Assembly (NCBI RefSeq): GCF_000315625.1
Contig: NW_005434574.1
Location: 188,224 to 252,223 of the forward strand
Length of the DNA: 64,000 bases
DNA from: Guillardia theta CCMP2712
Taxonomy: Eukaryota > Protista > Cryptophyta
Reading direction: 5' to 3'
Shown here: piece by piece, positions 4,365 through 52,868 of the stretch
How the letters are laid out: each line of letters begins with the position of its first letter
Numbering within the stretch: the stretch's first letter is position 1
The notes under the pieces: model-generated
Seen by the model: only the letters and a program-made list of their open reading frames with translations
What the model was told of the DNA's origin: nothing
The model's database searches: none
Translations under genes and position numbers: made by a program

Positions 4365-4436
4365 CTTTACTGGGTCAAGCCTCCTCGACTCTCCTGATTG
4401 TCCTCGTACTGATTTTTAACTTCACTTTGAGTAAAG
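4365..4436. mobile_element. ~72-bp MITE-like element with CTTTACT...AGTAAAG terminal inverted repeats
   Basis: TIRs at 4365-4371 and 4430-4436; related copies at 8755-8794, 25192-25297, 25506-25568, 38326-38383; absent at the paralogous sites 7280-7300 and 11457-11480. Confidence 0.7.
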
Positions 4437-5059: not shown

Positions 5060-6276
5060 ATGTGCCAGAGCGAACAATCACAACAAACGCTTGAAATAGA
5101 GATCAAAGAATCCTCAGAAAAATTCACCATCGATAAGCCCCCAGCCAAATGCAACGCAGATGAATTGCAAATCGAACCATCAAAGGCAACCAAGGAACTG
5201 AAAATCGATACCGAAGATGTAAAGCTTGGGTTTCAGCGTAGACCCTCCCTTCAGGACGACTGCCCCATCTTCCTTGACCTCGTCTTCCACCATAACATCC
5301 TCAAGCCAAATGACATCGACCGCTGCGGATCCTTCGCCATCCGTCGATCCTCCCTCACCTTCGGCGACGTCCTCGGCCAAGGCTCCTGCGGGGAGGTCAG
5401 GAGCGCCCTCTACAACGGCAGGCAGGTCGCCGTCAAGACCCTGTGCTCGAAGCTCGACGCCCGGTCCGAGGAGGGCAAGGACCTGCTCAAGGAGATCAGC
5501 ATGATGAGCCACGCGTTCCGGCACAAGAACGTGGTGGACTTCTACGGCATCTACGAGCACGACGGGCTGCCGTGGCTGGTGATGGAGCTGATGCCGGGGG
5601 GAGCCTGGAGCAGTACTACGAGGCCAAGAAGAAGTCGCGACGGGACGGGCGCTGGCGGCCCAAGACGAGGAGGGCAGTGTCGTGGGTGGAGGACATCCTG
5701 AGCGCGCTGGCGTACCTGCACGCGCAGAAGCCGCCGGTGATCCACCGAGACATCAAGCCGGCCAACATGCTGCTGACGGGGGACGGGAGGACGGTGAAGA
5801 TCGGGGACTTCGGGCTCAGCCGCATGTGTCCGCTGAGCCCGGGCAAGGCGCCGCTGACACCGGGAGGAGGCAGGGGGTCTGGCGGCTTCTTGTCGGACGA
5901 GTCGTTCATGTCGACGGAGCTGACAGGCACAACGGGGACGTACCGGTACATGGCGCCGGAGATCTTCCGGGGAGAGGGTCAGTACACGGCGGCGGTGGAC
6001 GTGTACTCTTTCTCGCTGGTGATGTGGTACATCTTCGCCGGGGAGCATCCCTTCTGCAACATCGACGGACACTCGGTGGCCAGCATGGCGGCCAAGTACA
6101 ACTTCCGTCCGGCAGTGCTGAGCGAGCGGATGATGCCGTGGGAGCTACAGGGGATGATGAGGCGATCATGGGCGGGGGAGGGGAAGGAGAGGCCGAGGGC
6201 GGCGGAGCTTCTGGAGGAGGTCGAGGCATGGCGAGGTAGGCGCGCGGGGTGTAGAGGTGTCTTCTCATGGAGATGA
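5060..6276 (+). pseudogene. TKL-type Ser/Thr kinase copy 1, frameshifted
   Basis: All kinase motifs present but split over two frames; G6 run at 5596-5601 versus G7 in the other copies. Could be a homopolymer sequencing error. Confidence 0.8.
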
Positions 6277-6654: not shown

Positions 6655-7017
6655 GCGCTCAGCCGCATGTGTCCGCTGAGCCCGGACAAGGCGCCGCTGA
6701 CACCGGGAGGAGGCAGGGGGTCTGGCGGCTACTTGTCGGACGAGTCGTTCATGTCGACGGAGCCGACAGGCACAACGGGGACGTACCGGTACATGGCGCC
6801 GGAGATCTTCCGGGGAGAGGGTCAGTACACGGCGGCGGTGGACGTGTACTCTTTCTCGCTGGTGATGTGGTACATCTTCGCCGGGGAGCATCCCTTGGAA
6901 ATATACTTTTGTTGCGGATCATTCTACGCTCAGGGGGACTACAGGCTGAGGGCGGTGGAGCTTGTGGAGGAGATCGAGGCTTTCAGTGCGGGGTCCGCGC
7001 GCTGGATCCGTCACTGA
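6655..7017 (+). pseudogene. Kinase C-lobe fragment fused to 3' flank of the copy-2/3 type
   Basis: SRMCPLSP...GTYRYMAPE...GEHP followed by the sequence found at 10670-10780. Confidence 0.85.
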
Positions 7018-8159
7018 GTGACGAGTCACACACTAGACTCCCGGTCCACGACGGTTGGCAATCATGACTGTCGTGGGGCGGGCCCGGCCTGGCAGTGGAT
7101 TCTCATCGATGAGACAGGATGAGACAGCATTTGGCCCACCCAAGAGGTTCAGTCCTGTTGTCTGCAAGAGAGAGGAGGAGGAGGACGATAACGGGTGGTA
7201 ACTTAGCGCTGACGTTCGGTTGGTAGGAAGTCATGCCAGCATCCGGTGTGACACGCCTTCATGAAACTTTCGGAATCGGTTTCAACAGTACCGGAGGACG
7301 TTCCGGGCCGGCCCGGCGTGAGCTCGTGGGCTGAGTTGTCACTAGTAGAACTGCCGGCCCGGTACGGTCCATGATGAAGCCCCGGGCCCGCCGGGCCCGC
7401 GGGGCAGCCTCCGCTGTACGGCCGGGCCGTGGCCCCACAGCGGACGGTCGCTGCATCAGGTAGGGTTGCAGGCAACTTGAGGCATTCCGTTCGGTGCCAC
7501 GGTGGCGGCGACTCAGTCCCGGGCCGGGCTGCCGGGGCCAGGCCAGCGTCTGATCATCGGATCATGTGTTGTACCCACGGCACTCAGTGGCAGGCTTCAA
7601 CCGGGACGATGTGACGGTAACAGCATCATGCCGAAATAGCGAAAACTAGAAGGACAATATGAAGTTTTATATGAAATACCTCCGGTACCGTGTCGGGTAC
7701 ATTTTGGTACTTCATCAGGCAAAATACCGACTGTTATGCATACTATGCCCAACGTGGCAGGGCGCATCTTGTACCGGGTGGACCTGGCGGCTACTATCGT
7801 AAACTCAGCACGGTACATACAACAGATATACGGTACTACGAGGATGAGGCTTGACCGTACGGTACATTATTAGCAAGATCTTCACTGTGACGACACTATT
7901 CTTAAGTTTGAGTAAATTGAAACCTGGAGAGCAGCGCGTCCATCGAAGGTGACTTTATATTACCGCACTCAACTTGAGCCGTTGAAGCTTGGCTGAGTCA
8001 GCCGGGAAGGGCCCGGGCCGGGCCCCCACCGTCAGTCTCTTTGTTTTATTTTTGTCGTAAACTTCCGACGTGATCGCTCGGTACGTTCTGTCAACTCAGT
8101 TCGGTACCACCCCTCTCCTCCCCTTGAAAACAACCGTCCGCTCCACCCCCCTACTACCG

Positions 8160-8530
8160 TACGGATGACGGCCACCGTACCCTGAGAGGTCGCAAGTCAA
8201 AATCATCTCTTTTTGCCTCCGGAGGCTCTCCTCTCCCCTCCTCTCCCCTCCCCACGGGCCAGGCTAGGCTAGCGGCGAGTTCCGGCAAGGGACGATGCCA
8301 TGATGCTCGGACGCCGACCCCTCGAAAGCAAGACGCGCTCCTCTCAAGCACAAATACTGAGAGAGGCTTGCGTCCCTTGAGGACGACTGCCCCATCTTCC
8401 TTGACCTCAACTACCACCATAACTACACCAGGAAACAGCCTTCCTGCAAAAACAAAACCTACGCGCGAAGCCAGCTGAAATCCAAACAAATATGTGCCAG
8501 AGCGAACAATCACAACAAACTGAATTGCAC
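8160..8530 (+). pseudogene. Truncated kinase 5' region
   Basis: DDCPIFLDL module and MCQSEQSQQT start, then breaks into a scrambled tract. Confidence 0.75.
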
Positions 8531-9498
8531 TGCAGTAGCAGGCATTCCCGGCGTACTCCGGGCTCCCCGGCGACTCAGTCCCGGGCCGGGCTGCCGGGGC
8601 CAGGCCAGCGTCTGATGTTGAGTACCCATGACATCGTTGCACTTGTAACGATAAAGGGCAATATGAAGTTTTATATGTCAAATACCTCCGGTACCGTGTC
8701 GGGTACATTTTGGTACTTCATCAGGCAAAATACCGACCGTACTGTTTATGACGGCTTTACTCAAAGTTAAGTTACTGAAAATCAGTACGAGGACTGTCAA
8801 GTTATGCATACTATGCCCAACGTGGCACTGTCAGGGCGCATCTTGTACCGGGTGGACCTGGCGGCTAGTCGTACTACGGTAAACTCAGCACGCCGGGTAC
8901 ATACAAGCACTCAACTTGAGCCGTTGAAGCTTGGCTGAGTCAGCCGGGAAGGGCCCGGGCCCCCGGGTGACTGTCAGTAAAAACCGTGTCAGTCTTGGAA
9001 GAAGTTTGTTTTATTTTTGTCGTAAACTTCCGACGTGATCGCTCGGTACGTTCTGTCAACTTCCGTACCACCCCTCTCCTCCCCTTGAAAACAACCGTCC
9101 GCTCCACCCCCCTACTACCGTACGGATGACGGCCACCGTACCCTGGGAGGTCGCAAGTCAAATTCATCTCTTTTTGCCTCCTCTTCTCTCCCCTCCCCTC
9201 CTCTCCCCTCCCCTCTCCTCGCCTCGCCTCTCCACTCCTCTCAGTCGGCTGTGGTGAGTGCGGCAGGCTAGCGGCGAGTTCCGGCAAGGAACGATGCCAT
9301 GATGCTCGGACGCCGAACCCTCGACTGCTAGACACGCTCCTCTCAACTTCACAAATACTGAGAGAGGCTTGCGTCCCTTGAGGACGACTGCCCCATCTTC
9401 CTTGACCTCAACTACCACCATAACTACATCTTTCCTAGGAAACAACCTTCCTACAAAAACAAAACCTACGCGCGAAGCCAGCTGAAGTCCAAACAAAT

Positions 9499-10644
9499 AT
9501 GTGCCAGAGCGAACAATCACAACAAACACTTGAAATTGAACCTTCAAAGGCAACCAAGGAACTGAAAATCGATACCGAAGATGTAAAGCTTGGGTTTGTG
9601 CGTAGACCCTCCCTTCAGGACGACTGCCCCATCTTCCTCGACCTCGTCTTCCACCATAACATCCTCAAGCCAAATGACATCGACCGCTGCGGATCCTTCG
9701 CCATCCGTCGATCCTCCCTCACCTTCGGCGACGTCCTCGGCCAAGGCTCCTGCGGGGAGGTCAGGAGCGCCCTCTACAACGGCAGGCAGGTCGCCGTCAA
9801 GACCCTGTGCTCCAAGCTCGACGCCCGGTCCGAGGAGGGCAAGGACCTGCTCAAGGAGATCGGCATGATGAGCCACGCGTTCCGGCACAAGAACGTGGTG
9901 GACTTCTACGGCATCTACGAGCACGACGGGCTGCCGTGGCTGGTGATGGAGCTGATGCCGGGGGGGAGCCTGGAGCAGTACTACGAGGCCAAGAAGAAGT
10001 CGCGACGGGACGGGCGCTGGCGGCCCAAGACGAGGAGGGCAGTGTCGTGGGTGGAGGACATCCTGAGCGCGCTGGCGTACCTGCACGCGCAGAAGCCGCC
10101 GGTGATCCACCGAGACATCAAGCCGGCCAACATGCTGCTGACGGGGGACGGGAGGACGGTGAAGATCGGGGACTTCGGGCTCAGCCGCATGTGTCCGCTG
10201 AGCCCGGGCAAGGCGCCGCTGACACCGGGAGGAGGCAGGGGGTCTGGCGGCTTCTTGTCGGACGAGTCGCCCATGTCGACGGAGCTGACAGGCACAACGG
10301 GGACGTACCGGTACATGGCGCCGGAGATCTTCCGGGGAGAGGGTCAGTACACGGCGGCGGTGGACGTGTACTCTTTCTCGCTGGTGATGTGGTACATCTT
10401 CGCCGGGGAGCATCCCTTCTGCAACATCGACGGACACTCTGTGGCATGTATCAGTGCTGAGAATGACATGCGGCCCGAAGTGCTGTACAGGATGCGGATA
10501 CCGAGAGAGCTACAGGGGATGATGAGGCGATCATGGGCGGGGAAGGGGAAGGAGAGGCCGAGGGCGGCGGAGCTTCTGGAGGAGGTCGAGGCATGGCGGA
10601 TAAGGGATGAGACATCATGCTGGTTGAAGGTACCTTGGAGATAA
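9499..10644 (+). CDS. TKL-type Ser/Thr protein kinase copy 2, intronless
   Basis: GQGSCGEV, VAVK, HRDIKPAN, DFG, GTYRYMAPE, DVYSF motifs. Confidence 0.93.
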   Translation: MCQSEQSQQTLEIEPSKATKELKIDTEDVKLGFVRRPSLQDDCPIFLDLVFHHNILKPNDIDRCGSFAIRRSSLTFGDVLGQGSCGEVRSALYNGRQVAVKTLCSKLDARSEEGKDLLKEIGMMSHAFRHKNVVDFYGIYEHDGLPWLVMELMPGGSLEQYYEAKKKSRRDGRWRPKTRRAVSWVEDILSALAYLHAQKPPVIHRDIKPANMLLTGDGRTVKIGDFGLSRMCPLSPGKAPLTPGGGRGSGGFLSDESPMSTELTGTTGTYRYMAPEIFRGEGQYTAAVDVYSFSLVMWYIFAGEHPFCNIDGHSVACISAENDMRPEVLYRMRIPRELQGMMRRSWAGKGKERPRAAELLEEVEAWRIRDETSCWLKVPWR

Positions 10645-12639
10645 GGTCACAGGACGAGCTGAGTTGGGGGAATATACTTTTGTTGCGTCATTCTACGCTC
10701 AGGGGGACTACAGGCTGAGGGCGGTGGAGCTTGTGGAGGAGATCGAGGCTTTCAGTGCGGGGTCCGCGCGCTGGATCCGTCACGTGTAGAGCTCCAATCA
10801 TGGCATCGCCGATGATCATAAATATGCTTTTGGATGAAGGGCCTGATCGAAACTCTCAGCTGACCCTCTTGTAAAGTTTCGATGACATGAGTCGTGACGC
10901 GGAACTTGGCGACATGGCCCGTCATAACGCAAACCGTAACTTACCCGGCAACTTTCACCATCACCGCAACTTGCCTCTTGATTGACTGAGAAAGAAAGGC
11001 AAACCTTGCCAGTTGGCAATCATCTCTGTCGTGGGGCGGGTCCGGCCGGGCGGGTTGTCGGGGAAGTACTGGAATTAAATCAACCAGATGAATTCTTCGA
11101 ATTAATCGATTGCTTCTAATCCTTGTTCCGTTCTCTTTCTTTACCTGAATCAAGTTCCTCCTCGCGCTCAGTACCTTTCATCCTCCTCCCCTCCCCTGTT
11201 GCCTTTCCTCCTCCCGGAGTCCACCATTTCCAAAACCAAGTCTCACCCAGCTCCTCCTCTCAGTCGTAGTGCGCAGGCTGTACACGTGTTCATCGATGAG
11301 ACAGCATTTGGCCAACCCATGAGGCTCAGTCCTGTTGTCTGCAAGAGAGAGGAGGAGGAGGACGATACTACGGAGGTAACTACACAGCCATGCGGAAGAA
11401 GACGTTGGTAGGAAGTCATGCCAGCATCTTGTGTGACACGCCTTCATGAAAATCGGTTTCAACAGTACCGGAGGACGTTCCGGGTGAGCTCGTGGGCTGA
11501 GTTGTAGAACGGCGCCGGCCCGGTACGAGCCCGCCGCCGGGCCCGCGGGGCCGGGCACTGCGCGCTGAGTAGCACTTCCCGGGCGACCGTCCGACGGTCC
11601 GGCCGCCGGCTGTACGGCCCGGCCGTGGTCACGGCGGACGGTCGCTGCATCAGGTAGGGTTGCAGGCAACTGGCAAGGGCATTCCGTTCGGTGGCGGCGA
11701 CTCAGTCCCGGCCGGGCCGGGCTGCCGGGGCCAGGCCAGCGTCTGATGTTGTACCCACCGGGCACTCAGTGACTTGTAACGATGTAACAGCATCATCAGT
11801 GCCGAAATAGCGAAAACTATAAGGGCAATATGAAGTTTTATTTGAAATACCTCCGGTACCGTGTCGGGTACATTTTGGTACTTCATCAGGCAAAATACCG
11901 ACTGTTATGCATACCATGCCCAACCGTGGCAGGGCGCATCTTGTACCGGGTGGAACTGGCGGCTAGTCGTAAACTCAGTACGGTACATACAACAGGTATA
12001 CGGTACTACCGTGATACAACAGGTATACGGTACTACGAGGATGAGGCTTGACCGTACGGTACATTATTAGCAAGATCTTTACGACACTATTCTTAAAAGT
12101 TTGAGTAAATTCAAACCTGGAGAGCAGCGCGTCCATCGAAGGTGACTTTATATTACCGCACTCAACTTGACTCGCGGGCGGCCGTTGAAGCTTGGCTGAG
12201 TCAGCCGGGAAGGGCCCGGGCCCCCGGGTGACTGTCAGTAAAAACCGTGTCAGTCTTGGAAGAAGTTTGTTTTATTTTTATCGTCAACTTCCGACCTGAT
12301 CGCTCGGTACGTTCTGTCAACTTCCGTACCACCCCTCTCCTCCCCTTGAAAACAACCCCCCGCTCCACCCCTGGCTCCACCCCATGACGGCCCCGTAGCC
12401 TGAGAGGTCGCAAGTCAAATTCATCTCTTTTTCCCTCCTCTCCTCTCCCCTTCCCTCCCCTCCCCTCCTCTCCCCTCCCCTCTTCTCTCAGTCGGCTGTG
12501 GTAAGTGCGGCAGGCTAGCGGCGAGTTCCGGCAAGGAACGATGCCATGATGCTCGGACGCCGAACCCTCGACTGCAAGAAACGCTCCTCTCAAGCAAAAA
12601 TACTGAGAGAGGCTTGCGTCCCTTGAGGACGACTGCCCC

Positions 12640-13851
12640 ATGGAAAGAACCTTCCTGCAAAAACAAAACCTACGCGCGAAGCCAGCTGAAGTCCAAACAA
12701 ATATGTGCCAGAGCGAACAATCACAACAAACTGAATTGCAAATTGAGCCATCAAAGGCAACCAAGGAACTGAAAATCGATACCGAAGATGTAAAGCTTAG
12801 ATTTCAGCGTAGACCCTCCCTTCAGGACGACTGCCCCATCTTCCTTGACCTCGTCTTCCACCATAACATCCTCAAGCAAAATGACATCGACCGCTGCGGA
12901 TCCTTCGCCATCCGTCGATCCTCCCTCACCTTCGGCGACGTCCTCGGCCAAGGCTCCTGCGGGGAGGTCAGGAGCGCCCTCTACAACGGCAGGCAGGTCG
13001 CCGTCAAGACCCTGTGCTCCAAGCTCGACGCCCGGTCCGAGGAGGGCAAGGACCTGCTCAAGGAGATCGGCATGATGAGCCACGCGTTCCGGCACAAGAA
13101 CGTGGTGGACTTCTACGGCATCTACGAGCACGACGGGCTGCCGTGGCTGGTGATGGAGCTGATGCCGGGGGGGAGCCTGGAGCAGTACTACGAGGCCAAG
13201 AAGAAGTCGCGACGGGACGGGCGCTGGCGGCCCAAGACGAGGAGGGCAGTGTCGTGGGTGGAGGACATCCTGAGCGCGCTGGCGTACCTGCACGCGCAGA
13301 AGCCGCCGGTGATCCACCGAGACATCAAGCCGGCCAACATGCTGCTGACGGAGGACGGGAGGACGGTGAAGATCGGGGACTTCGGGCTCAGCCGCATGTG
13401 TCCGCTGAGCCCGGGCAAGGCGCCGCTGACACCGGGAGGAGGCAGGGGGTCTGGCGGCTTCTTGTCGGACGAGTCGTTCATGTCGACGGAGCTGACAGGC
13501 ACAACGGGGACGTACCGGTACATGGCGCCGGAGATCTTCCGGGGAGAGGGTCAGTACACGGCGGCGGTGGACGTATACTCTTTCTCGCTGGTGATGTGGT
13601 ACATCTTCGCCGGGGAGCATCCCTTCTGCAACATCGACGGACACTCTGTGGCATGTATCAGTGCTGAGAATGACATGCGGCCCGAAGTGCTGTACAGGAT
13701 GCGGATACCGAGAGAGCTACAGGGGATAATGAGGCGATCATGGGCGGGGAAGGGGAAGGAGAGGCCGAGGGCGGCGGAGCTTCTGGAGGAGGTCGAGGCA
13801 TGGCGGATAAGGGGTGAGACATCATGCTGGTTGAAGGTACCTTGGAGATAA
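12640..13851 (+). CDS. TKL-type protein kinase copy 3 (conserved ATG at 12703)
   Basis: Same motif set; near-identical to copy 2. Confidence 0.93.
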   Translation: MERTFLQKQNLRAKPAEVQTNMCQSEQSQQTELQIEPSKATKELKIDTEDVKLRFQRRPSLQDDCPIFLDLVFHHNILKQNDIDRCGSFAIRRSSLTFGDVLGQGSCGEVRSALYNGRQVAVKTLCSKLDARSEEGKDLLKEIGMMSHAFRHKNVVDFYGIYEHDGLPWLVMELMPGGSLEQYYEAKKKSRRDGRWRPKTRRAVSWVEDILSALAYLHAQKPPVIHRDIKPANMLLTEDGRTVKIGDFGLSRMCPLSPGKAPLTPGGGRGSGGFLSDESFMSTELTGTTGTYRYMAPEIFRGEGQYTAAVDVYSFSLVMWYIFAGEHPFCNIDGHSVACISAENDMRPEVLYRMRIPRELQGIMRRSWAGKGKERPRAAELLEEVEAWRIRGETSCWLKVPWR

Positions 13852-24937: not shown

Positions 24938-26266
24938 TGAAGTTTGTTCAGCCTGCTTCTTCAATCCGACTGATTCTCGAGGTTGAAACCGATTCAATAC
25001 CAATTGCGCTCGGGCTCGGAAACGCACTGCGGCCCGGCCCCCCGCACACGGTGTCCCGGTCGCGCCGGGCGGCCGCGGGTCCGATCGGGCCGGGGGGGCG
25101 CGGCCCGGTCGGGCCCCGGGTCCGAGGGCCGGCCGCGGCGGCCGCGGCAGCGGTCAGTCCGATTCCGAGCCGCTCGGACACTGCAGTAAGCCTTTACCGT
25201 CAGGCTCTACTCAAAGTTAAGTCAAAAATCAGTACGGTACTCTGTGACGGTACGACTGACAGTGAGGACAATCAGGAGACACGGTCGGTGTCAGGCTCAG
25301 TACTACTAAGGCTACTGCGGCCCGGCCAGCCGCCGCTTGTTCAGTGGACTCGACTCAGCCGCGTCAGTCCGGGACTCGAGGCTTGATCGCACCGCGGCAG
25401 CCCGGGCCGGGCTGTCGGAGCCGCCTACGGTGTACGGCGTACGGCCTGAGCCTAAAATAAGCCAATGACTCTGATCGGAGGTCATGCCAACTTGCAACGT
25501 GACACGGTCAAGCCTCCTCGACTCTCCTGATTGTCCTCGTACTGATTTTAACTTAACTTTGAGTAAAGACACCGTGGCACGGTTAGTGAGCCTCGGAGCC
25601 GCCTTAGTACCGGGTGTACGGCGTACCGTCGGCCTGAGCCTCTAAAATAAGCCAGTGCCACTGAGCGGCCGCCCGATCGGTTGAGAACCGTTGAAAAAAC
25701 TACTAGTCATATGACTGGCAGGTAAATTTTACAAAGTTTTAGGCAGCCTCCGACTGTCACTAGAGTCACGGGCCCGCCTTGTTTTTACACTGCTGATGTA
25801 GAGGTAGAGACAAAATCTTTAGTCATCCTCCTATCAGGTACCGGTCGTCGCGTTCTTGGATGACAGTGTATTTTAACTTTCGGGCATGAACTTGGATAGA
25901 CTACCCACCCTTTTGTAGTTGAAGTGCTTTAAATCAGTGGGTGGGTGCGAAGTTGTCTCAACTTTTTCTCCGTTACATGGCGGTTAAAAAAGTCTGCTGG
26001 TTAACTTCAAAGAGAACTCGGACCCCCCAAGTGTACTGCATGACCACCCCTTTTAGGGGTCCTTTTCAGATCCTTAAGTTGCGCTACTAAACGCATTACT
26101 AAAGAAAAAATCTTTTACTTCAATCCAGTCCGACGCCAAGTAGAGCGTGTCGGAAGTAACAGCAAGTTGAAGATCAAAGTATGAACACAATCATCATCAA
26201 CAACAAAGACAACATCTAGTACTACTACACCAGGAAAGAACCTTCCTGCAAAAACAATACCTACAC

Positions 26267-27508
26267 ATGAAGCCAGCTGAAATCCAAGCGAATATGTGCC
26301 AGAGCGAACAATCACAACAAACACTTGAAATAGAGATCGAAGAATCCTCAGAAATATTCACCATCGATAAGCCCCCAGCCAAATGCAACGCAGATGAATT
26401 GCAAATTGAGCCATCAAAGCCAACCAAAGAAATGAAAATCGATACCGAAGATGTAAAGCTTGGGTTTCAGCGTAGACCCCCCCTTCAGGACGACTGCCCC
26501 ATCTTCCTTGACCTCGCCTCCCACCATAACATCCTCATGCCTGATGACATCGACCGCTGCGGATCCTTCGCCATCCGTCGATCCTCCCTCACCTTCGGCG
26601 ACGTCCTCGGCCAAGGCTCCTGCGGGGAGGTCAGGAGCGCCCTCTACAACGGCAGGCAGGTCGCCGTCAAGACCCTTTGCTCCAAGCTCGACGCCCGGTC
26701 CGAGGAGGGCAAGGACCTGCTCAAGGAGATCGGCATGATGAGCCACGCGTTCCGGCACAAGAACGTGGTGGAGTTCTACGGCATCTACGAGCACGACGGG
26801 CTGCCGTGGCTGGTGATGGAGCTGATGCCGGGGGGGAGCCTTGAGCAGTACTACGAGGCCAAGAAGAAGTCGCGACGGGACGGGCGCTGGCGGCCCGAGA
26901 CGAGGAGGGCAGTGTCGTGGGTGGAGGACATCCTGAGCGCGCTGGCGTACCTGCACGCGCAGAAGCCGCCGGTGATCCACCGAGACATCAAGCCGGCCAA
27001 CATGCTGCTGACGGGGGACGGGAGGACGGTGAAGATCGGGGACTTCGGGCTCAGCCGCATGTGTCCGCTGAGCCCGGGCAAGGCGCCGCTGACACCGGGA
27101 GGAGGCAGGGGGTCTGGCGGCTTCTTGTCGGACGAGTCGATCATGTCGACGGAGCTGACAGGCACAACGGGGACGTACCGGTACATGGCGCCGGAGATCT
27201 TCCTGGGAGTGGGTCAGTACACGGCGGCGGTGGACGTGTACTCTTTCTCGCTGGTGATGTGGTACATCTTCGCCGGGGAGCATCCCTTCTGCAACATCGA
27301 CGGACACTCGGTGGCCAGCATGGCAGCCAAGTACAACTTCCGTCCGTCGCTTCTTAACGATCGGGTTCCGAGAGAGCTACAGGGGATAATGAGGCGATCA
27401 TGGGCGGGGGAGGGCCAGGAGAGGCCGAGGGCGGCGGAGCTTCTGGAGGAGGTCGAGGCATGGCGAGGTAGGCGTGCGGGGTGTAGAGGTGTCTTCTCAT
27501 GGAGATGA
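26267..27508 (+). CDS. TKL-type protein kinase copy 4
   Basis: Full motif set, intact ORF. Confidence 0.93.
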   Translation: MKPAEIQANMCQSEQSQQTLEIEIEESSEIFTIDKPPAKCNADELQIEPSKPTKEMKIDTEDVKLGFQRRPPLQDDCPIFLDLASHHNILMPDDIDRCGSFAIRRSSLTFGDVLGQGSCGEVRSALYNGRQVAVKTLCSKLDARSEEGKDLLKEIGMMSHAFRHKNVVEFYGIYEHDGLPWLVMELMPGGSLEQYYEAKKKSRRDGRWRPETRRAVSWVEDILSALAYLHAQKPPVIHRDIKPANMLLTGDGRTVKIGDFGLSRMCPLSPGKAPLTPGGGRGSGGFLSDESIMSTELTGTTGTYRYMAPEIFLGVGQYTAAVDVYSFSLVMWYIFAGEHPFCNIDGHSVASMAAKYNFRPSLLNDRVPRELQGIMRRSWAGEGQERPRAAELLEEVEAWRGRRAGCRGVFSWR

Positions 27509-30260: not shown

Positions 30261-31029
30261 TCACTCAGAAACGTAGAAAACTCATCTGCTAATCAACGTT
30301 TCCTCATCGTCTCTTTCCTCGTCCTCGTCCTCGTCTCCCTCCCCCCTCGTCCTCCTCAAGGCTCACCGGCGCACGTTGCCTCAGGCTACTGTCATCCATG
30401 GTTGATTGGAGGCTAGCTAATCACCCGGCGTTGCCTCGCATGATCGGCGCCGGCCGCAAGTGCGGCCGCCCGGCCGCCCGGCGGCCGGGCGCGGGCCATT
30501 CCGAAGTTCCGCCGGACTGCCTCCGCCCGGACACTGCGGGCCTAGCCAGGCTAGCCTGGGCCGGGCTACTAGCGGCTGAGCCGTAGTACGGTAGTCACTG
30601 ACATGATCCCGGCTGACGGGCCGGCCCGACTCATGCCATCGGATGCCATCCTGGCCGCAGTCCGACGGGTGACATAGGCTGACCGTCCGACTACCGGGCT
30701 AGGTCAACTCAGTGCCGCCGGGCCCCCCGGGCCCATCATGCCGTCACAGAGTCACGGGCCCGGCCAACTTCGATAGCCGCACTAGTCATTGACCATTCCG
30801 TTCCAATTCCCTTCTGGATTTTTTCTGTTTTCGGAGGGGTCTTTTTCGTACAGGATTTTTATTTCACAGGGTAATGAAAGTTTGTACCACTAGTCTGAAA
30901 TGTTTTCAGAACATTATTGCGCACAACTGTTTCCAAATATGGATTGTCAATGCTTAAAAGTATTATACATAATACAAATCTCCAAAAATAATATAGCGCC
31001 CTGCACTTCGTCTACCATTGCCCATTCGA

Positions 31030-32190
31030 ATGCGAGAGCCGGCAACGGCACGTCGGCGGAGCGTCAGAACAGCAGCGGCGAATGGCATACAGTCTCGACG
31101 AGATGCTGATGATCGACAAAGCTTTTCTGACTTAGAAGGATCTCCGTTATCTGCACCTGAATCTTTGTATGAACCGCTCTGCTTGGAAATCCAAGCAGCT
31201 CGAGAACAATCTCGTTTTGAGGTTCGATGGGTCAATCCTATTATGGATGAGCAGATTCTCCTCACACCAGGTGTAGGCTTATCATATTTTGAAGATGATC
31301 AGGCAAGCATGAGGAGATTTGGTATCATAAAACGTCTTGTTTCGGAAACCAGCGTGGAGGTATACATCTTGTATGACAAGATACTCCTAGAAAAGGTTGA
31401 TCAGAACATAACGAACCATGGTCTTGGCAACAGAAATCTACGGAAGATCATTCAATCGATGTCAGAAAGTATTTGCTATCAATCAATTTACCTTGATGTC
31501 GTTGACATTGATATGATTGAAGATTTGGTAAATGTTCAATACCCAATTTTTCTTGATCCACATGCGCCAATGCCAAGCTTGAAAAATGTACAAGTTGTAG
31601 GACACATTTTCTTCAAGGATGGAGCGCAAAAGTCGTTCTGTGACATTTCTTACTTCAAAATGCCAAATCCTGAGAGAACAATCAGCAGATTCATCTCTGG
31701 TAATGACTCTATTTCATCCTCTGCAGCATATCTTCAAATGATTTCTGACATTGAATCGTTCAAGTTGAGCATGAAGCAATGGCTGAAATCAAGAAGCTCT
31801 GTGTATGAGAAGGCAGGAACCCGTTCTTTGGAGTTCACTTGTAATGTTTCCATCCGCAGCATACTTCGATTAGTTCCTAGGCAAATGTTCAAATTTATCA
31901 AAGTGAAAAGAACCAGTCACAATTATACTTGGGTGTTACCAGCCAATATTGTCAGCAGCAAGGTTTTCAGACAAGCTTTAGATCTGCCTTTAAAGTCAGC
32001 TCCACAACTGCAAGAGAACTTGACGCAGATTTTTCTAGGTTTTTCTCTTCTCATTCAAAGTCGATTACGCATTAACACAACGTTTCCTAGGTGGCCCAAT
32101 GTACATTTCGATCAAGCGTGGCAATCTTGTGCTAGGGTTCGAAACCATTGCAAGCATTGGTGGCATGTTCGGAAAGCTTCAGTGGGATGA
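31030..32190 (+). CDS. Transposon accessory protein with BAH-like domain (3' part may be spliced)
   Basis: Long ORF; LLTPGVGLSY, RFGIIKRL, VEVYILY, ICYQSIYLDVVDIDMIEDLVNV follow the order and pattern of the BAH consensus. Confidence 0.55.
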   Translation: MREPATARRRSVRTAAANGIQSRRDADDRQSFSDLEGSPLSAPESLYEPLCLEIQAAREQSRFEVRWVNPIMDEQILLTPGVGLSYFEDDQASMRRFGIIKRLVSETSVEVYILYDKILLEKVDQNITNHGLGNRNLRKIIQSMSESICYQSIYLDVVDIDMIEDLVNVQYPIFLDPHAPMPSLKNVQVVGHIFFKDGAQKSFCDISYFKMPNPERTISRFISGNDSISSSAAYLQMISDIESFKLSMKQWLKSRSSVYEKAGTRSLEFTCNVSIRSILRLVPRQMFKFIKVKRTSHNYTWVLPANIVSSKVFRQALDLPLKSAPQLQENLTQIFLGFSLLIQSRLRINTTFPRWPNVHFDQAWQSCARVRNHCKHWWHVRKASVG

Positions 32191-35045
32191 TGCACGAGGC
32201 AGGAAGAGGAGATAAGTGTAATACAGATTTATCAATGAACCTAAACCTGATGCAAGGAGATTTCTAAATGCAAACCAATTGCTCAGTTTTCTACTCATCA
32301 TTTTGTGGTCTTCTTGTTCGGCTTCCTCAGCTGACCCCTCCATCATTTCGTCATAAGCACGCTTTTTTGATCCTGCAGCATTTGACTCCATCACTCCCTT
32401 TCTCCAGCAAGGTCTTCCATAAATGCGATGTCGCAACTCTAAAGCTGACATACTCAAGCATCCTAATGTAATGTTCCGCTTGGAAAGATGATAGTGAAAC
32501 ATTTCTGCCACATGACCGGCAGCAAGCATGTGGAAGTATACAGCACTGAATAGTTCCTTGCTTCCACACTCAACCACATACTTCACCACGAATGTGTTGA
32601 TTCTTGTTGCTAAGGTTTCAACGCTTTCAGGAGTAAGCTCTGAAACATGAGTACAAGACAAAGTAGCAAGCACAGAAGACAATTCAGTGAAAATTTCTTG
32701 CCATCGCTGCCTTTCTTCCACATTTTCGTACAACAATACCAAGAGAGGTCCCATGGCCACATTCATCAAGTCATCATACTGTTTCCCTGTCATGTTTGGA
32801 AGTTGCTTCTTGTCATTGAGCTCAAGCTTGTAGTTGATTCCACTCTTGTGTAGGATACTTTGTGCGGCACTGATCCTCTTTTTCTTCTTGGCCGTGAAGA
32901 AAATACTTTTCAAGGCGCAGTGAACAATCCTCATCTTGAGATGTAACATACAAAGAACGAGGCACATACATGTCAACCCGATATCTGACAACTTTTCATG
33001 ATCCCGAGACATTCCATGGTCTTGTTTCAATACAACAACCTTTTGGCCCTTCTTCAACATGCCGGAGGTCTTGCTGGATCTGATCTTTGTAATATCTTGT
33101 CTGTTCAAGCTTTTCCCATCAAACATGCACGTATCAACGATGTTGTTTTTGCCACCATCCATCACCACGTCCTGCATCAGCCAAAACACATCTGGTCGGA
33201 GAGATCTGTCCTTGCAAAACTCATCTACTGTGGTTTCAGTTGCAACTTCGTTGATGTCGAAGATGCAATGGCGCTCCCCATTCTTCACTTTGCAATACAA
33301 GCAACAGGCGTGGTCAGGATTCTTTTGGCTGCCACCACCTGTGCGAATATCTTCAGTTCATGTTTAACACAAAGAGTTGATGAATTACCTGACATCCCCA
33401 TGAGATCCCAAAATCCCTTCAAATCCCCACGAAAATCAATTTCTATTTCAATGACGAGATCAGGTGTGGAATTCGGATCACTGGCTGTTCTATCACGTCC
33501 CCCAATGCAGTTCAAAACCCCATCTTTGTCCTTGTAGAAGTGAAGTCCAGCTTTGATTTTCTTGATCTCTCCGTTCTCACAAGTGACAAACAGATCCTTC
33601 AAGATGCTTTTCAAATCAAAACCATAGACATTCCACAGATTCTTGTCAATATTCTCGATAGTGTCCTTCAGGTACAACAACAAGAAAGAGATATATGAAG
33701 CAGGCGAATTCATTCTGGTCTCCTGGTCAAACATAGAGTTTGCAACGTCAACCGCCTTGTTCCACACAGCTATGAGATTCATTGCAAACTCTGTCTGTTC
33801 TGTACCTGACTGAGCTGATGATCCCAATCTCGTGCTATCGAAACAGAGGGAAAGCACCAAGAATTCTACAAGGTACATGTTTGGATCTTCTCGCGCAAGC
33901 TTCATGAACAACAGTTCGAGCAATTTGAGAATGGAAGCACCATGTCCGCCAGGAAGTTCATTGATTCCGTCCACCATGTCAGTCACAAGCTTCTTCTGCT
34001 TGGCTCTCGAAGTACTGATAGAAGATGTACTTCCAAATATTTTGACTCCGCATTTTTTCATCATGTCATAAACGAATTTCAAAGATTTGTGTGTCAGCTG
34101 TTGACCCATAGTCAAGAGACCAACTTCATCCACGTTGGGAGCTATTGCATCATACAAGCTCTGGATGGCTTTTTTGACTTTGCGATTTCTCTCACAACGG
34201 CTGTCCAAATTCGGTGCAATTGCGTGAGCATATCCTGTCAAAAAATTTTCGAAATGAAACAATGAATCCGGATTTTGCCTCAACGTGGAAAGATGGCCGA
34301 ATGCCTTTCCAGCCTGACTAGAGCCATTAAGCCCAGACATCTGACGAATACCTTTTGACAACAAAGCAGATAATGACCCAACCTCGGAGAAAATGTCTTT
34401 GAGAATTTTTTCCTTCCGATACTCGAACTCCTTGGGGATATCTTCGACATTCATGGGGCACTTATCATTGGGATAATTGGCTTTCCAAATGTCTTCGAAC
34501 GTCAAGTTCAAAATTCTGTCTACGTTTGGCAACAACTCTTTCAGCGCCATATTTTCCCTAGTAAGCATTTCCTTTTCATACTGTAGCTGATTCACCTGAC
34601 ATGACAGACTGAAATATCCCTGTATGGTACTGCCGACAACAGATGCTGGTGAAAACAAATATCCATTTCCAACAAAGCTCATAAATGTGCTGACATCTGG
34701 TCTACCTTTGCAATCAAGGAAGCCTTCCATCCAAGCAAAGTACTCTACTCCCCTCCAGGTTTTCAGGTCCCATGACGGCAAACGACGGTCTGGCCTTGGA
34801 CTGATCTGGTTCAAAGTCGAGGCAACCTGAGGGCTATCCAAATTCATTGGATAGAATTGATGGATGTTTTCCATATCTTGACAATGCAAAGGTCGACGAT
34901 AGAAGCATGGATGGACTCGGAAAGGATCGAAGTTTTCTGCGCGGCATGATGATTGAGAAAACAAGTTTTGCACAAAAACATGAGTTTGTTGGTGGATTTT
35001 GTCCGGGAAAACTTTGTTGAGAAGCACAGGTTTCCACCATTCCAA
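32179..35045 (-). CDS. RAG1-core/Transib/Chapaev-like DDE transposase; 50-nt intron at 33339-33388; true start unresolved
   Basis: Splicing GTAATT...CACAG joins the 586-aa and 373-aa ORFs in frame. Motifs in order: LCFDSTR, FRGDLKGFWDLMG, CCLYC, MLHLKMRI, YFHMLAAGHVAEM, LGCLSMSALELRHR. Confidence 0.85.
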
Positions 35046-36408
35046 TGAAGAGTGAGAAAAGCACCAAAGATCCTCTTTGCAGTTTCAAATTAGAGAAAAA
35101 ATATTGGTTCCTGTGGCCAAACTTTTCCATCCAGGGCTGAGCACAACAATCGAAGCTTATATAATAGTAGGATCCCACCCACCCCATGATCTGTCATTTT
35201 TCACTACCCCCTACCACCAAATTACTATTATTTTCATTAGTTGATGGGGGTTAATTATTTGGTAGGTAGGGTAGTCAACTGCGATTGTGTTTCTCCTACC
35301 CACCCTAGGAAAAGAGAGAATCGAAGGGGTACCGAGCACAATTGTGTGTTTGATGTTAGATCAGATCATGGGGGAACACAGTACAAGTTACCCTACCCCC
35401 ACATAACCTTTAGGTAGGGGTTCCATCAAATTTGATACCGGTACTGCCTATGAAAATATAAGTCTAAAGATGGGTGCTTGATAGGTATTACAGGGTTATA
35501 TCTGTAATGGGGTGGGTAGTCGACCAGCGTGGTATTTTTTTTTCACCCCCCCCGACCCTTCAACAAGTGATTATAGTTCAAGCCAATCTGTACGAGATAT
35601 TCTTCTTAAAATCAACTTGTTGAAGAGGTTAAAAGGGTGGAGTCCAATCCTTGCTCAAATATTTGGCCTACCCCACCTTAAGACATATGATATAAAAACA
35701 AGGGGTAGTCATCGGCTGTCTTGCCTGAGCGGACGGGTGCCTAGAAGATTCAGAAACTTTTTGGTACAAAATTTGTACGAAGGGGTCAGGACCCCTCTGG
35801 TACAAAACATGCAACGATTTGGAACAAGTATTTTAAAGCCCGTACAAACAAAATGGTCTGGTACAATAAATTCCAGAAGGGACTTGGAACGGAATGACGC
35901 CCGGCCAACCGGTATCTGGCGACATTCGCTCAAGCCAGTGCGGCGACTCCCGACACTGTGACGCCACTGTCAACCGTACTCAGGGCGGTAGCTGGCGACG
36001 GGGGCCGCTCACTGACTGAGTGAGCCTTTCCGGATCATGAGCGGCATGCCATGATGATGACACGCCAACGCCGTATGGCTCCGAGCCTTGAAAGTTGTCG
36101 GACAGCCAGTGAGATACACGGTGCCCCGAGAAAGCTTCGACTCGATTGTGACCAAGCAGCCTATAGCAACGAAGAAGATGGCCTTGAAAGTGACGTCCAA
36201 GGCTTACAAAAGGCGCTTTAAAGGCTCAAGTGTTACCCTTAACAGACAAAAATTTCACGTGAGCTCTGCTCCCTATGAGACCTAAAGACTCAGTGAAACC
36301 AAGAGGTATTTACTACAACCTGACAAAACCGAAATACAAAAGTTCCTCTCCACAAAATACACTAGACAAGGTCTTGCTCCCTTAGCCAAATCACTCCTTC
36401 CCTGACCC

Positions 36409-37623
36409 TCATCTCCATGAGAAGACACCTCTACACCCCGCACGCCTCCCTCGCCATGCCTCTACCTCCTCCAGAAGCTCCGCCGCCCTCGGCCTCTCCT
36501 TTCCCTCCCCTGCCCATGATCGCCTCATCATCCCCTGTAGCTCTCTCGGAACCCGATCGTTGAGAAGCGACGGACGGAAGTCGTGCTTGGCCGCCATGCT
36601 GGCCACCGAGTGTCCGTCGATGTTGCAGAAGGGATGCTCCCCGGCGAAGATGTACCACATCACCAGCGAGAAAGAGTACACGTCCACCGCCGCCGTGTAC
36701 TGACCCTCTCCCCGGAAGATCTCCGGCGCCATGTACCGGTACGTCCCCGTTGTGCCTGTCAGCTCCGTCGACATGAACGACTCGTCCGACAAGAAGCCGC
36801 CAGACCCCCTGCCCCCTCCCGGTGTCAGCGGCGCCTTGCCCGGGCTCAGCGGACACATGCGGCTGAGCCCGAAGTCCCCGATCTTCACCGTCCTCCCGTC
36901 CTCCGTCAGCAGCATGTTGGCCGGCTTGATGTCTCGGTGGATCACCGGCGGCTTCTGCGCGTGCAGGTACGCCAGCGCGCTCAGGATGTCCTCCACCCAC
37001 GACACTGCCCTCCTCGTCTCGGGCCGCCAGCGCCCGTCCCGTCGCGACTTCTTCTTGGCCTCGTAGTACTGCTCCAGGCTCCCCCCCGGCATCAGCTCCA
37101 TCACCAGCCACGGCAGCCCGTCGTGCTCGTAGATGCCGTAGAACTCCACCACGTTCTTGTGCCGGAACGCGTGGCTCATCATGCCGATCTCCTTGAGCAG
37201 GTCCTTGCCCTCCTCGGACCGGGCGTCGAGCTTGGAGCAAAGAGTCTTGACGGCGACCTGCCTGCCGTTATAGAGGGCGCTCCTGACCTCCCCGCAGGAG
37301 CCTTGGCCGAGGACGTCACCGAAGGTGAGGGAGGATCGACGGATGGCGAAGGATCCGCAGCGGTCGATGTCATTTTGCTTGAGGATGTTATGGTGGAAGA
37401 CGAGGTCAAGGAAGATGGGGCAGTCGTCCTGAAGGGAGGGTCTACGCACAAATCCAAGCTTTACATCTTCGGTATCGATTTTCATTTCCTTGGTTGGCTT
37501 TGATGGCTCAATTTGCAATTCATCTGCGTTGCATTTGGCTGGGGGCTTATCGATGGTGAATTTTTCTGAGGATTCTTTGATCTCTATTTCAAGTGTTTGT
37601 TGTGATTGTTCGCTTTGGCACAT
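36409..37623 (-). CDS. TKL-type protein kinase copy 5
   Basis: Full motif set, intact ORF. Confidence 0.93.
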   Translation of the reverse strand: MCQSEQSQQTLEIEIKESSEKFTIDKPPAKCNADELQIEPSKPTKEMKIDTEDVKLGFVRRPSLQDDCPIFLDLVFHHNILKQNDIDRCGSFAIRRSSLTFGDVLGQGSCGEVRSALYNGRQVAVKTLCSKLDARSEEGKDLLKEIGMMSHAFRHKNVVEFYGIYEHDGLPWLVMELMPGGSLEQYYEAKKKSRRDGRWRPETRRAVSWVEDILSALAYLHAQKPPVIHRDIKPANMLLTEDGRTVKIGDFGLSRMCPLSPGKAPLTPGGGRGSGGFLSDESFMSTELTGTTGTYRYMAPEIFRGEGQYTAAVDVYSFSLVMWYIFAGEHPFCNIDGHSVASMAAKHDFRPSLLNDRVPRELQGMMRRSWAGEGKERPRAAELLEEVEAWRGRRAGCRGVFSWR

Positions 37624-38851: not shown

Positions 38852-40048
38852 CTATCTATTGCCTAACATCGCCGACAATGCATGAACAAAACAACCGCTG
38901 CGAAAATTGCTCTGCATTCGCCATGCCTCTACCTCCTCAAGAAGCTCCGCCGCCCTCGGCCTCTCCTTCCCCTCCCCCGCCCATGATCGCCTCATTATCC
39001 CCTGTAGCTCCCTTGGCATCATCCGCTCGCTCAGCACTGCCGGACGACACTCGTATTTAGCTGCCATGCTGGCCACCGAGTATCCGTCGATGTTGCAGAA
39101 GGGATGCTCCCCGGAGAAGATGTACCACATCACCAGCGAGAAAGAGTACACGTCCACCGCCGCCGTGTACTGACCCTCTCCCCGGAAGATCTCCGGCGCC
39201 ATGTACCGGTACGTCCCTGCTCTGGCTGTCATTTCGCATTCGATACCAAGATCGAGTTTGTCCGCCATCTCTGAGTCTTGAAGATTGCACGCTCCCCAGG
39301 ATGGGCATCTCCTACTCACTCCAAAGTCCCCGATCTTCACCGTCCTCCCGTCCCCCGTCAGCAGCATGTTGGCCGGCTTGATGTCTCGGTGGATCACCGG
39401 CGGCTTCTGCGCGTGCAGGTACGCCAGCGCGCTCAGGATGTCCTCCACCCACGACACTGCCCTCCTCGTCTCGGGCCGCCAGCGCCCGTCCCGTCGCGAC
39501 TTCTTCTTGGCCTCGTAGTACTGCTCCAGGCTCCCCCCCGGCATCAGCTCCATCACCAGCCACGGCAGCCCGTCGTGCTCGTAGATGCCGTAGAAGTCCA
39601 CCACGTTCTTGTGCCGGAACGCGTGGCTCATCATGCCGATCTCCTTGAGCAGGTCCTTGCCCTCCTCGGACCGGGCGTCGAGCTTGGAGCACAGGGTCTT
39701 GACGGCGACCTGCCTGCCGTTGTAGAGGGCGCTCCTGACCTCCCCGCAGGAGCCTTGGCCGAGGACGTCGCCGAAGGTGAGGGAGGATCGACGGATGGCG
39801 AAGGATCCGCAGCGGATAAGCTCCTTTTTGTGTATTTTATGGTGGGAGGCGAGGTCAAGGAAGACGGGGCAGTCGTCCTCGAGTGAAGATGGCGTTCTTT
39901 TGAGGATTTGCAGTTTTGTTGTTTTCTCCCCGTAATTGATTTCTATGAAACCATACCTGGAGAAGAACGTTGGATCAATCTCTAGTGCCAACATCCTGCA
40001 GTTTGACTCGAAGGACGAACGCTCGGAGCAGCTATCGGTATGGCACAT
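38852..40048 (-). CDS. TKL-type protein kinase copy 6 (divergent N-terminus, activation loop and tail)
   Basis: Full motif set, intact ORF. Confidence 0.93.
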   Translation of the reverse strand: MCHTDSCSERSSFESNCRMLALEIDPTFFSRYGFIEINYGEKTTKLQILKRTPSSLEDDCPVFLDLASHHKIHKKELIRCGSFAIRRSSLTFGDVLGQGSCGEVRSALYNGRQVAVKTLCSKLDARSEEGKDLLKEIGMMSHAFRHKNVVDFYGIYEHDGLPWLVMELMPGGSLEQYYEAKKKSRRDGRWRPETRRAVSWVEDILSALAYLHAQKPPVIHRDIKPANMLLTGDGRTVKIGDFGVSRRCPSWGACNLQDSEMADKLDLGIECEMTARAGTYRYMAPEIFRGEGQYTAAVDVYSFSLVMWYIFSGEHPFCNIDGYSVASMAAKYECRPAVLSERMMPRELQGIMRRSWAGEGKERPRAAELLEEVEAWRMQSNFRSGCFVHALSAMLGNR

Positions 40049-42405: not shown

Positions 42406-42706
42406 TGCATTGCCGGCCGTCCTCGGGTCAAAAACACGTAAAGTGGACATCAGAACTGAAGAACTCGAAAAGACTGCTTTTCAATACCGTACCAAATCTC
42501 TGTTTCACCCCGAAATTCCCCTATAACAGTACCCCACCCCCCTTGTCAAAACTCGCGGAAAGTCCTGGTCCCCTTGGCATGCGCAAGGACCGTTGGCGAC
42601 TGGCGATGGAGAAGTCAGGTTGAGCACTGAAGATCGTCAAGCCAGGAAGTTTGCATCCTGACAACAACATCATCACTGTGACAAGAGCATCATCGTTGAG
42701 GTGCAG

Positions 42707-43978
42707 ATGATCTCCTATCAAGAGCTCAGAAAGAAGTACTACGTTGCCTGCAACCTCGAATTTCGCCACAATCTGCAGGCTGAGCTTTTTCCTGTACAAG
42801 AATCCCCCGAGCGAGCAGCTTGTAGCTCTCCTCAGGTAGAGACGATCATCGTGCAAGACCAGGAAGAGAAGAAGAAGACTCCGAGAGCTATCAAACCGAG
42901 CGCCCTCAAGAAACGATCCTCCCTCGATCAAGATTGCCCCGTCTTCCTGCAGCTTGCCGAAAAGCACAACGTACTCAAGGAGCAAGACCTTGACCGTTGC
43001 GAGACTTTCGTCATACAGAAGACTTCTCTAATGGTCGGCCACTTGATAGGAAGAGGAGCCTCGGGTGAAGTCAGGAGAGCCGATTACATGGGGAAGAAAG
43101 TTGCCGTTAAGACCTGGCGCGACCTTGGCTCCGAGGAGGGCAAGGACCTGCTCAAGGAGATCGGCATGATGAGCCATGCCTTCCGGCACAAGAACGTGGT
43201 GGACTTCTACGGCATCTACGAGCACGACGGGCTGCCGTGGCTGGTGATGGAGCTGATGCCGGGGGGGAGCCTGGAGCAGTACTACGAGGCCAAGAAGAAG
43301 TCGCGACGGGACGGGCGCTGGCGGCCCGAGACGAGGAGGGCAGTGTCGTGGGTGGAGGACATCCTGAGCGCGCTGGCGTACCTGCACGCGCAGAAGCCGC
43401 CGGTGATCCACCGAGACATCAAGCCGGCCAACATGCTGCTGACGGAGGACGGGAGGACGGTGAAGATCGGGGACTTTGGAGTGAGCAGGAGATGCCCTCA
43501 CTCGCTTAGAAACGGTCTGCTGACCCCGAGGTCTATCGTCATGACTCCGAGGAGCTCGCGCGATCCCAGCCCTTTCGCAAGCGACTTGTTTGGGCCGGAG
43601 CTGACAGGGGCGGTCGGCACTTACCGGTACATGGCGCCGGAGATCTTCCGGGGAGAGGGTCAGTACACGGCGGCGGTGGACGTGTACTCTTTCTCGCTGG
43701 TGATGTGGTACATCTTCGCCGGGGAGCATCCCTTCTGCAACATCGACGGACACTCGGTGGCCGGCATGGCAGCTAAGTACAACTTCCGTCCGGCAGTGCT
43801 GAGCGAGCGGATGATGCCGAGGGAGCTACAGGGGATGATGAGGCGATCATGGGCGGGGGAGGGGAAGGAGCGGCCGAGGGCGGCGGAGCTTCTGGAGGAG
43901 GTCGAGGCATGGCAGGAGAAAAAATCGAGGTGTGAACAGCTTTCATTTCGTCGTTTCTTCCCGCATCGCAAGCGTTGA
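42707..43978 (+). CDS. TKL-type protein kinase copy 7 (divergent N-lobe start, activation loop and tail)
   Basis: GRGASGEV, VAVK, HRDIKPAN, DFG, GTYRYMAPE. Confidence 0.93.
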   Translation: MISYQELRKKYYVACNLEFRHNLQAELFPVQESPERAACSSPQVETIIVQDQEEKKKTPRAIKPSALKKRSSLDQDCPVFLQLAEKHNVLKEQDLDRCETFVIQKTSLMVGHLIGRGASGEVRRADYMGKKVAVKTWRDLGSEEGKDLLKEIGMMSHAFRHKNVVDFYGIYEHDGLPWLVMELMPGGSLEQYYEAKKKSRRDGRWRPETRRAVSWVEDILSALAYLHAQKPPVIHRDIKPANMLLTEDGRTVKIGDFGVSRRCPHSLRNGLLTPRSIVMTPRSSRDPSPFASDLFGPELTGAVGTYRYMAPEIFRGEGQYTAAVDVYSFSLVMWYIFAGEHPFCNIDGHSVAGMAAKYNFRPAVLSERMMPRELQGMMRRSWAGEGKERPRAAELLEEVEAWQEKKSRCEQLSFRRFFPHRKR

Positions 43979-51735: not shown

Positions 51736-52868
51736 ATCGCGTCGGATCAGATTGTTGCGTCGAAGGGGGGAGTTATAGACCAAATCGATGACTGGAAGCA
51801 AAATTTGCAAACCCCGATGAAAAGAGATGGTTTCGACGGGGAAACCCCTTGAGCACCCTACCTACCTTTGTCTATGCCCAAAAAGGGGTGCGGGTGCCTC
51901 AGATACAGAGAGAAATGGTTCCACCTTGAGCGTGTGAGAGAACCGCGCGCTGACATGACGAGGCAGCAGCAGGGGCATCAGCATGCTGACCTGTCGCACT
52001 AGCCTAGTAGAGGTGAGGGGATGAAAGAGCTTGAGGAGGGAGTGGAGCTCTGGACGCTGACTCATTTCCAGATGTTGTGTTGAAAGATATTGTGTTGAAA
52101 GATGTTGTGTTGGATCATGAAAGCCTTACCTAGAAAAAGCCATCTAGATCTATGCAGCAGTGTGATCTAGTCATCGAAAGCATGACGACAAACGACACTT
52201 GGCTACTCACTGGGCAAATGCGAGGGAGAGCTCATACGCACAGAAATGCAGTGTAGTGTACTTGAAGAGGATTGACAGGACGTGGTTGAAATGCTCATTG
52301 CGTGATGTGGTGTTGTCAGGCATCGATCATCGTAGGAGAGAGATCCCATCCAATCCCAGCGCAGGCTGGATTTAGTCTTGATGATACCACTAGTAGGTAG
52401 ATCTTGATGCTTTAGTCTTGATGATACCACTAGCAGGTAGATCTTGATGCTTTAGTCTTGATGATACCACTAGTAGGTAGATCTTGATGCTTTAGTCTTG
52501 ATGATACCACTAGCAGGTAGATCTTGATGCTTTAGTCTTGATGATACCACTAGTAGGTAGATCTTGATGCTTTGTACCTCATGCAATATCCACATGTCGA
52601 CATGTTGAGGTGTAGAGAGGAGAAGAATAGAGATGAAATGAAATGGGAATGGATAGTGTCATAGAGATGCATGGGATGCGATGGGGGGGGGAAGGGGATG
52701 GGATGAAAGGGGAGGGTGCGTCTTGAGTTATCTATGCCACCTTTGCTACCAGTGACGCACGGCAGGGCAAAACTCTGCAGCTCAGATCAGATAACGAGCC
52801 CGGCCAGCGTGTCATGCTGACACCGTGGCGGCGGGACAAGGTGTATGCGCAGCGGCTAGATTTCGGAT
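51736..52868 (+). repeat. ~1.1-kb direct repeat, copy 1
   Basis: Matches 54036-55059 along its length. Confidence 0.92.
52371..52573. repeat. 40-bp minisatellite, 5 copies (2 in the second direct repeat)
   Basis: TTTAGTCTTGATGATACCACTAG(T/C)AGGTAGATCTTGATGC. Confidence 0.95.

Follow-up and report, generated by a model that had tools for sequence, protein, structure and literature searches.

Short palindromic insertions upstream of tandem kinase genes

The stretch of Guillardia theta DNA studied here (the window, 64 kb of contig C100) carries tandem protein kinase paralogs, a 5103-bp DNA transposon and, in the non-coding DNA upstream of the kinase genes, many short insertions of one stereotyped form, X-c-revcomp(X)-g-X, in which a word X of k bases is followed by C, its own reverse complement, G and X again. 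We refer to these insertions as scars. Two scar-rich regions lie 5' of kinase open reading frames (ORFs): one or more islands at 7000-9100, upstream of the ORF at 9499-10644, to which the partial upstream copies A (7118-8520) and B (8560-9530) correspond, and an island at 11300-12300, upstream of the ORF at 12640-13851, represented by copy C (11295-12740). We compared these copies with one another, together with a 1.1-kb repeat pair at 51.7 and 54.0 kb (51736-52868 and 54036-55059).

An earlier note on this DNA had drawn attention to the pattern through ten words. All ten were recovered exactly at the coordinates given there, and alignment shows that their flanks agree across the paralogous copies. 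Three-base forms include GTG-c-CAC-g-GTG at 7494-7504, where the paralog has a single GTG (11691-11693), GTA-c-TAC-g-GTA at 8871-8881, and GAT-c-ATC-g-GAT, followed by a further C-centred addition, at 7552-7566. The two-base form AG-c-CT-g-AG (55036-55043) corresponds to a single AG at 52851-52852. Among the one-base forms, T-c-A-g-T occurs at 11796-11800 and at 11168-11172, opposite a single T at 7629 and 3669, respectively, and G-c-C-g-G at 11711-11715 and 8892-8896. The two palindromic arms either overlap fully or are joined end to end, as at 7338-7346, where a one-base duplication carries two 2-nt arms (GT-c-AC plus TA-g-TA). The series extends from k=0, seen as a bare CG insertion at 11759-11760 and as c-G-g within a copy of a transposon terminal inverted repeat (TIR), through k=1, the commonest, to k=2 and k=3. 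Near variants are CA-c-TG-t-CA (8826-8833) and GT-g-AC-g-GT (7611-7618), the latter belonging to a minor G,G-centred class.

The events at 8871, 8826, 8892, 7552 and 11711 are missing from both other paralogs and are therefore insertions; those at 7494, 11796 and 55036 have one partner each and their direction is not polarised. Once present, motifs are common to paralogs, as with an ATG form at 8295, 9294 and 12541, and scars are also found within transposon copies. The earlier note had suggested that a C-centred palindrome on the left and a G-centred one on the right are joined through an inverted duplication. We fitted a hairpin model of this kind (left flank, C and mirror arm; mirror arm, G and right flank; duplication of k bases) to those paralog indels that were clean and 3-16 nt long, 18 in all. 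Its C..G version accounted for 10 of them and the next-best centre pair for 5, and a stricter indel set agreed with this result.

The insertion process spares coding DNA. Between two kinase paralogs, 1112 aligned coding bases contained 14 substitutions and no gaps; the upstream DNA of the same comparison contained 31 gap openings in 521 bases under permissive gap scoring. In 9.1 kb of island DNA, the excess amounts to roughly 107 motifs with k=1, 26 with k=2 and 25 with k=3; these are upper-side figures, as the islands were picked by palindrome density.

The kinase genes themselves form an intron-poor array (5060-6276, 9499-10644, 12640-13851, 26267-27508, 36409-37623, 38852-40048 and 42701-43978) whose members share near-identical cores and have different C-termini and activation loops; near 5600 there is a one-base frameshift in the first copy. 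Within the 1.1-kb repeat pair, one copy has three extra units of a 40-bp tandem repeat (52371-52573).

The centre bases are fixed and independent of the flanks

We counted 32 three-base C,G forms in the window. Local shuffles gave 1.6 when 2-lets were kept and 2.6 when either 3-lets or 4-lets were, with at most 8 in any of 180 shuffles. A comparison with shuffled controls, which the earlier note had proposed for paralogous repeats genome-wide, places the pattern in the window far above chance, and slippage or chance was rejected as its source on these grounds. The two-base form is found 49 times (20-31 in shuffles), and forms with four or five bases are absent from the window. A further 19 three-base cases were found in approximately 46 kb of other DNA from the same genome.

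Across the assembly (87.1 Mb, 669 contigs) we counted six fixed words. The GTG form is present 407 times against 101 with C and G swapped, and the GTA form 512 times against 103. The controls with A/T centres number 9 and 23, the former being the GTA form and some 57-fold below its C,G counterpart. Composition bias as a source of the centres was rejected, since swapping C and G makes a difference and centres of A/T are so much rarer. The two-base AG form shows a modest excess (5421 versus 4337), and the one four-base word tested shows none (6 versus 5). If the two three-base words are typical of their 32 classes, the genome would contain of the order of 10^4 intact three-base motifs. X is 0-3 bases long, and not 4.

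Among one-base words in the islands, enrichment is confined to X-c-comp(X)-g-X (51/13 and 114/42); off-diagonal words are not enriched. C before X together with G after X is found in just 2 of 49 three-base motifs, so the flanks do not determine the centre bases. The pattern is also strand-symmetric. Two minor classes stand above the A/T background, C,C/G,G with 123 instances of the GTG word, several of which overlap canonical motifs, and G,C with 101; the variant at 7611 belongs to these minor classes. The pattern is real, genome-wide and rule-based, and the description of it as a rule-based local mutator in the earlier note is upheld.

These properties bear on two explanations that involve no transposon. 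Template switching during replication or repair (forward, backward and forward copying), or slippage in palindrome-rich DNA, could in principle be invoked, since clusters of the form X-rc(X)-X do result from such switches and some of the unexplained island indels are plain duplications. Spacers produced in this way should, however, derive from the flanks or from composition, whereas the C-left/G-right arrangement exceeds its swap four- to fivefold and A/T centres approximately 57-fold, the centres are flank-independent and the length stops at 3. The centre-base controls largely refute this explanation, and we regard it as very unlikely. Even less credence can be given to a sequencing or assembly artefact: the insertions are known here from assembled sequence alone, but strand symmetry, the sparing of coding DNA, the sharing of motifs by paralogs once they are present and the precise grammar all argue against it.

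Comparison with known excision footprints

The earlier note had compared the insertions with hairpin footprints of RAG, Transib and hAT transposases. The arms are indeed the reverse complement of the adjoining flank, as expected of a hairpin origin, but none of these systems predicts the pattern unmodified. The comparison needs correction because the hAT rule for the centre base fails and because RAG and Transib give no unpaired centre base and make 5-bp duplications.

The footprints of hAT elements (Ac/Ds, Tam3, Ascot-1 and Hermes) are similar in that they consist of odd palindromes, derived from flank hairpins and joined by microhomology (PMC5873905, PMC2921059). In these, the base complementary to the flanking one forms the centre of the palindrome (PMC5873905), reflecting a nick one base outside the element, and the duplication is of about 8 bp; here the centres are fixed as C and G and the duplication is 0-3 bp. 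Ordinary hAT-type footprints could mimic the pattern if the family preferred targets that start with C and end with G. The required C before and G after X are found in only 2 of 49 motifs and in none of the four cited pairs, and we consider this explanation refuted. Nor do the scars show the hAT duplication length: the window contains no forms with four or five bases, and the one four-base word counted genome-wide is not in excess.

RAG and Transib enzymes nick at the border, leaving no unpaired centre base. RAG1/2, ProtoRAG and HzTransib resemble the present case in forming flank hairpins, with P nucleotides, and the candidate transposase described below is predicted to share their fold. They differ in their 5-bp duplication and heptamer-like ends (PMC10629977); that duplication was not seen among the scars, and the partner ORF of the candidate is not RAG2-like by sequence. 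The MULE Muta1 also forms a flank hairpin (PMC5499845) but has an 8-9-bp duplication and mostly precise repair.

Tc1/mariner elements are nicked inside the element, so that terminal bases stay at the donor site. Taken by itself, T-c-A-g-T resembles a case in which CA and TG, the last bases of an element, are kept between short duplications, and the ends of the candidate element are CA...TG. Tc1/mariner excision, however, involves no hairpin, a fixed TA target and two or three fixed bases, whereas the scars have one base plus target-templated arms, and their middle always complements X and is never a fixed A or T. Retention of this type is likewise refuted. By the features tested, the scars behave as a hairpin-type excision footprint, yet not as that of hAT, RAG/Transib or mariner elements. 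Our literature searches found no account of such footprints in G. theta; hairpin footprints are known, and neither a register inside the end nor such a density of scars was found described.

A nick one base inside the element may explain the pattern

It seems likely that the insertions are footprints left by the excision of cut-and-paste DNA transposons with C...G ends, in which the nick falls one base inside the end and insertion duplicates 0-3 bases of the target. This model builds on the observed pattern and its excess, on the direction of the changes, on centre bases that are independent of the flanks, on the limit of three bases and on the clustering. Insertion of the element would duplicate X. 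Judging from the pattern, the transposase would then nick the non-transferred strand at each end, one base within the element, and the freed 3'-OH on the terminal C would attack the opposite strand at the border, closing the flank as a hairpin whose only loop base is C. A host nuclease would open each hairpin 0-3 bases beyond the loop, giving 3' tails C-rc(X) and C-X, which would be complementary because the target was duplicated. Annealing and fill-in of these tails would yield X-c-rc(X)-g-X, with a net gain of 2k+2 bases, and repeated visits to the same non-coding stretches would create G+C-rich palindromic islands. Since the centre bases are independent of the flanks, they most likely represent the element's own terminal C, kept on the flank hairpin. 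Independent opening of the hairpins on the 5' side was considered as a source of the C,C/G,G and G,C forms, but predicts about 195 instances of the GTG C,C word where 123 were found; such opening is at most a minor route.

A RAG1-fold transposon as the candidate agent

The earlier note had named a transposon and a miniature inverted-repeat transposable element in the window as carriers of C...G termini. The second does not stand, as the 1.1-kb repeat (51736-52868 and 54036-55059) has no terminal inverted repeats. The first, at 30794-35896, has TIRs of 25-29 bp that start CATTCC and end GGAATG, is flanked by AC on both sides and is located in a scar-rich island. Its transposase gene, on the minus strand (32179-34874), has one 50-nt GT-AG intron (33339-33388), and a transcript-derived protein of 881 amino acids is on record. 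A convergent partner ORF on the plus strand (31018-32190), encoding 390 amino acids, has no Pfam match; it is conserved on a metagenome contig, where it adjoins a distant homolog of the transposase. By eye, the N-terminal half of the partner ORF looks BAH-like.

The transposase has the motifs D346, D484 and E796 of a DDE enzyme, C508/C511 and H765/H771. The structure predicted from the 881-residue protein (mean predicted local distance difference test score 67) matches RAG1, ProtoRAG and HzTransib (E 1e-8 to 6e-4; template modelling score by target about 0.5), and matches CACTA-type models about as well. The CMCT clade (EnSpm/CACTA, Mirage, Chapaev and Transib, together with Plavaka, ESTA and Lanisha) is characterized by CA..TG ends, a C(2)C motif, paired histidines spaced H(3-4)H and duplications of 2-5 bp (PMC12730594). 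The candidate has CA..TG termini, C508-x2-C511 between the second D and E, paired histidines and, at the window copy, AC on both sides as a possible short duplication, but differs in the H(5)H spacing seen in most family members (H(4)H in one distant member), in its duplication-free copies and in having no sequence match to any named lineage. The hallmarks of CACTA/EnSpm, CACTA or CACTG ends and a Transposase_21 domain, are absent, the ends being CATTCC and the window transposase having no Pfam match. Genome searches for Transposase_21 and for Plavaka gave no matches, but neither did their controls. On the basis of the motifs D346, D484, C508/C511, H765/H771 and E796 and of the CA..TG ends, the transposase appears to fall in or beside the CMCT clade. 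Plant CACTA footprints have been modelled with blunt cuts, and a precedent may exist in that literature; in the CMCT literature we found no account of footprints that retain the terminal C on a hairpin.

Approximately 35 related transposase loci were identified (25-64% identity), some 15 of them with long open frames; outside G. theta, relatives turned up only in Hanusia phi and in a few metagenome contigs. Four metagenome contigs with homologs are each below 5 kb and do not include the element ends. A match to a 20-kb metagenome contig was discarded as spurious, being driven by a tandem repeat; that contig has no three-base C/G motif. At 4 of 10 insertion sites (the window element and 3 of 9 others), a flank reaches or exceeds the 95th percentile of the window for C/G-centred palindromes.

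The window element, with its apparent 2-base AC/AC duplication, fits k=2. A 2.4-kb non-autonomous subfamily with the same TIRs has no duplication, proven at C203 by means of a tandem unit and apparent at C68 and C154; these copies fit k=0, including the bare CG and c-G-g. Even within Transib, the length of the duplication is labile (bioRxiv 10.64898/2026.08.26.747230), which makes other transposase lineages the place to look for k=1 and k=3.

Several observations on individual copies are recorded here. The non-autonomous copy at C203:3368-8786 lies within a 21-bp tandem repeat and adjoins a telomere-like TAAACCC array. At C307, C389 and C276, a transposase lineage of 64% identity adjoins an ORF that looks like a CDC7-like kinase and a duplicated piece of about 420 bp of the partner gene; the ends of these copies fall beyond the sequence examined. 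The copy at C35:471802-476526 is internally deleted, partly inverted and inserted in an inverted satellite. Separately, a repeat of about 70 bp at 25499-25568 recurs at 4371-4436 and, reversed, at 8752-8794 and 25192-25290. It has some 1000 candidate copies genome-wide, mostly solo; on the minus strand, one of its ends has the sequence CTTTACTCAAAG. The interval 25192-25568 is bounded by two inverted copies and resembles a small C...G element without a target duplication.

Several results weigh against excision as the source of the scars, or against this family as its agent. About 8 of the 18 clean indels are left unexplained by the hairpin model, and the sizes of the C,C/G,G and G,C classes do not fit the prediction from independent opening and are quantitatively unexplained. 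The AC/AC at the window element could arise by chance (1 in 16), and at the C252 copy the two flanks come from different sites. The DNA examined contained neither an element with a 3-base or proven 1-base duplication nor a trio of filled, empty and scar alleles. Elements are also few, with 16 exact TIR ends counted beside an estimated 10^4 three-base scars, so that the excision model needs high turnover.

The shortage of elements and the missing 1- and 3-base duplications would favour a route without any element, in which nuclease breaks with staggers of 0-3 bases undergo fill-in, addition of a non-templated C, fold-back or hairpin sealing, and joining; break hot spots would also suit the clustering. 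This route demands three undescribed steps, yet a C...G-ended candidate with the fold of a hairpin-former is present within such islands. Moreover, adding exactly one C and sealing a hairpin afterwards is not a known activity of terminal transferases. We therefore think the elementless route rather unlikely. If the scars are indeed excision footprints, the balance tilts towards the diverse RAG1-fold (CMCT-clade) family of the window as their agent.

Implications for the RAG1 fold and the G. theta genome

Known hairpin-forming transposases nick in two registers, RAG and Transib at the border and hAT one base outside it. A nick one base inside the end would, if true, be a third, and would offer a direct handle on how the RAG1 fold positions its cut; the structure search made here found no solved structures of CMCT enzymes beyond Transib and RAG. 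The scars would also constitute a fossil record: for thousands of past jumps, in a genome where few elements survive, they would preserve the length of the target duplication, the preference for sites and the position at which the hairpin opened. Since C/G-centred palindromes hold half of the island bases compared with one fifth in shuffles, in islands picked by that density, footprints may be a major source of non-coding sequence in G. theta. Taking these points together, we tentatively raise the possibility that a two-gene RAG1-fold family, cutting one base inside its ends with a stagger of 0-3 bases and steered to the chromatin upstream of genes, might have written the G+C-rich islands through some 10^5 stacked scars, in which case regulatory DNA in this alga would be continually rebuilt by a rule-based mutator.

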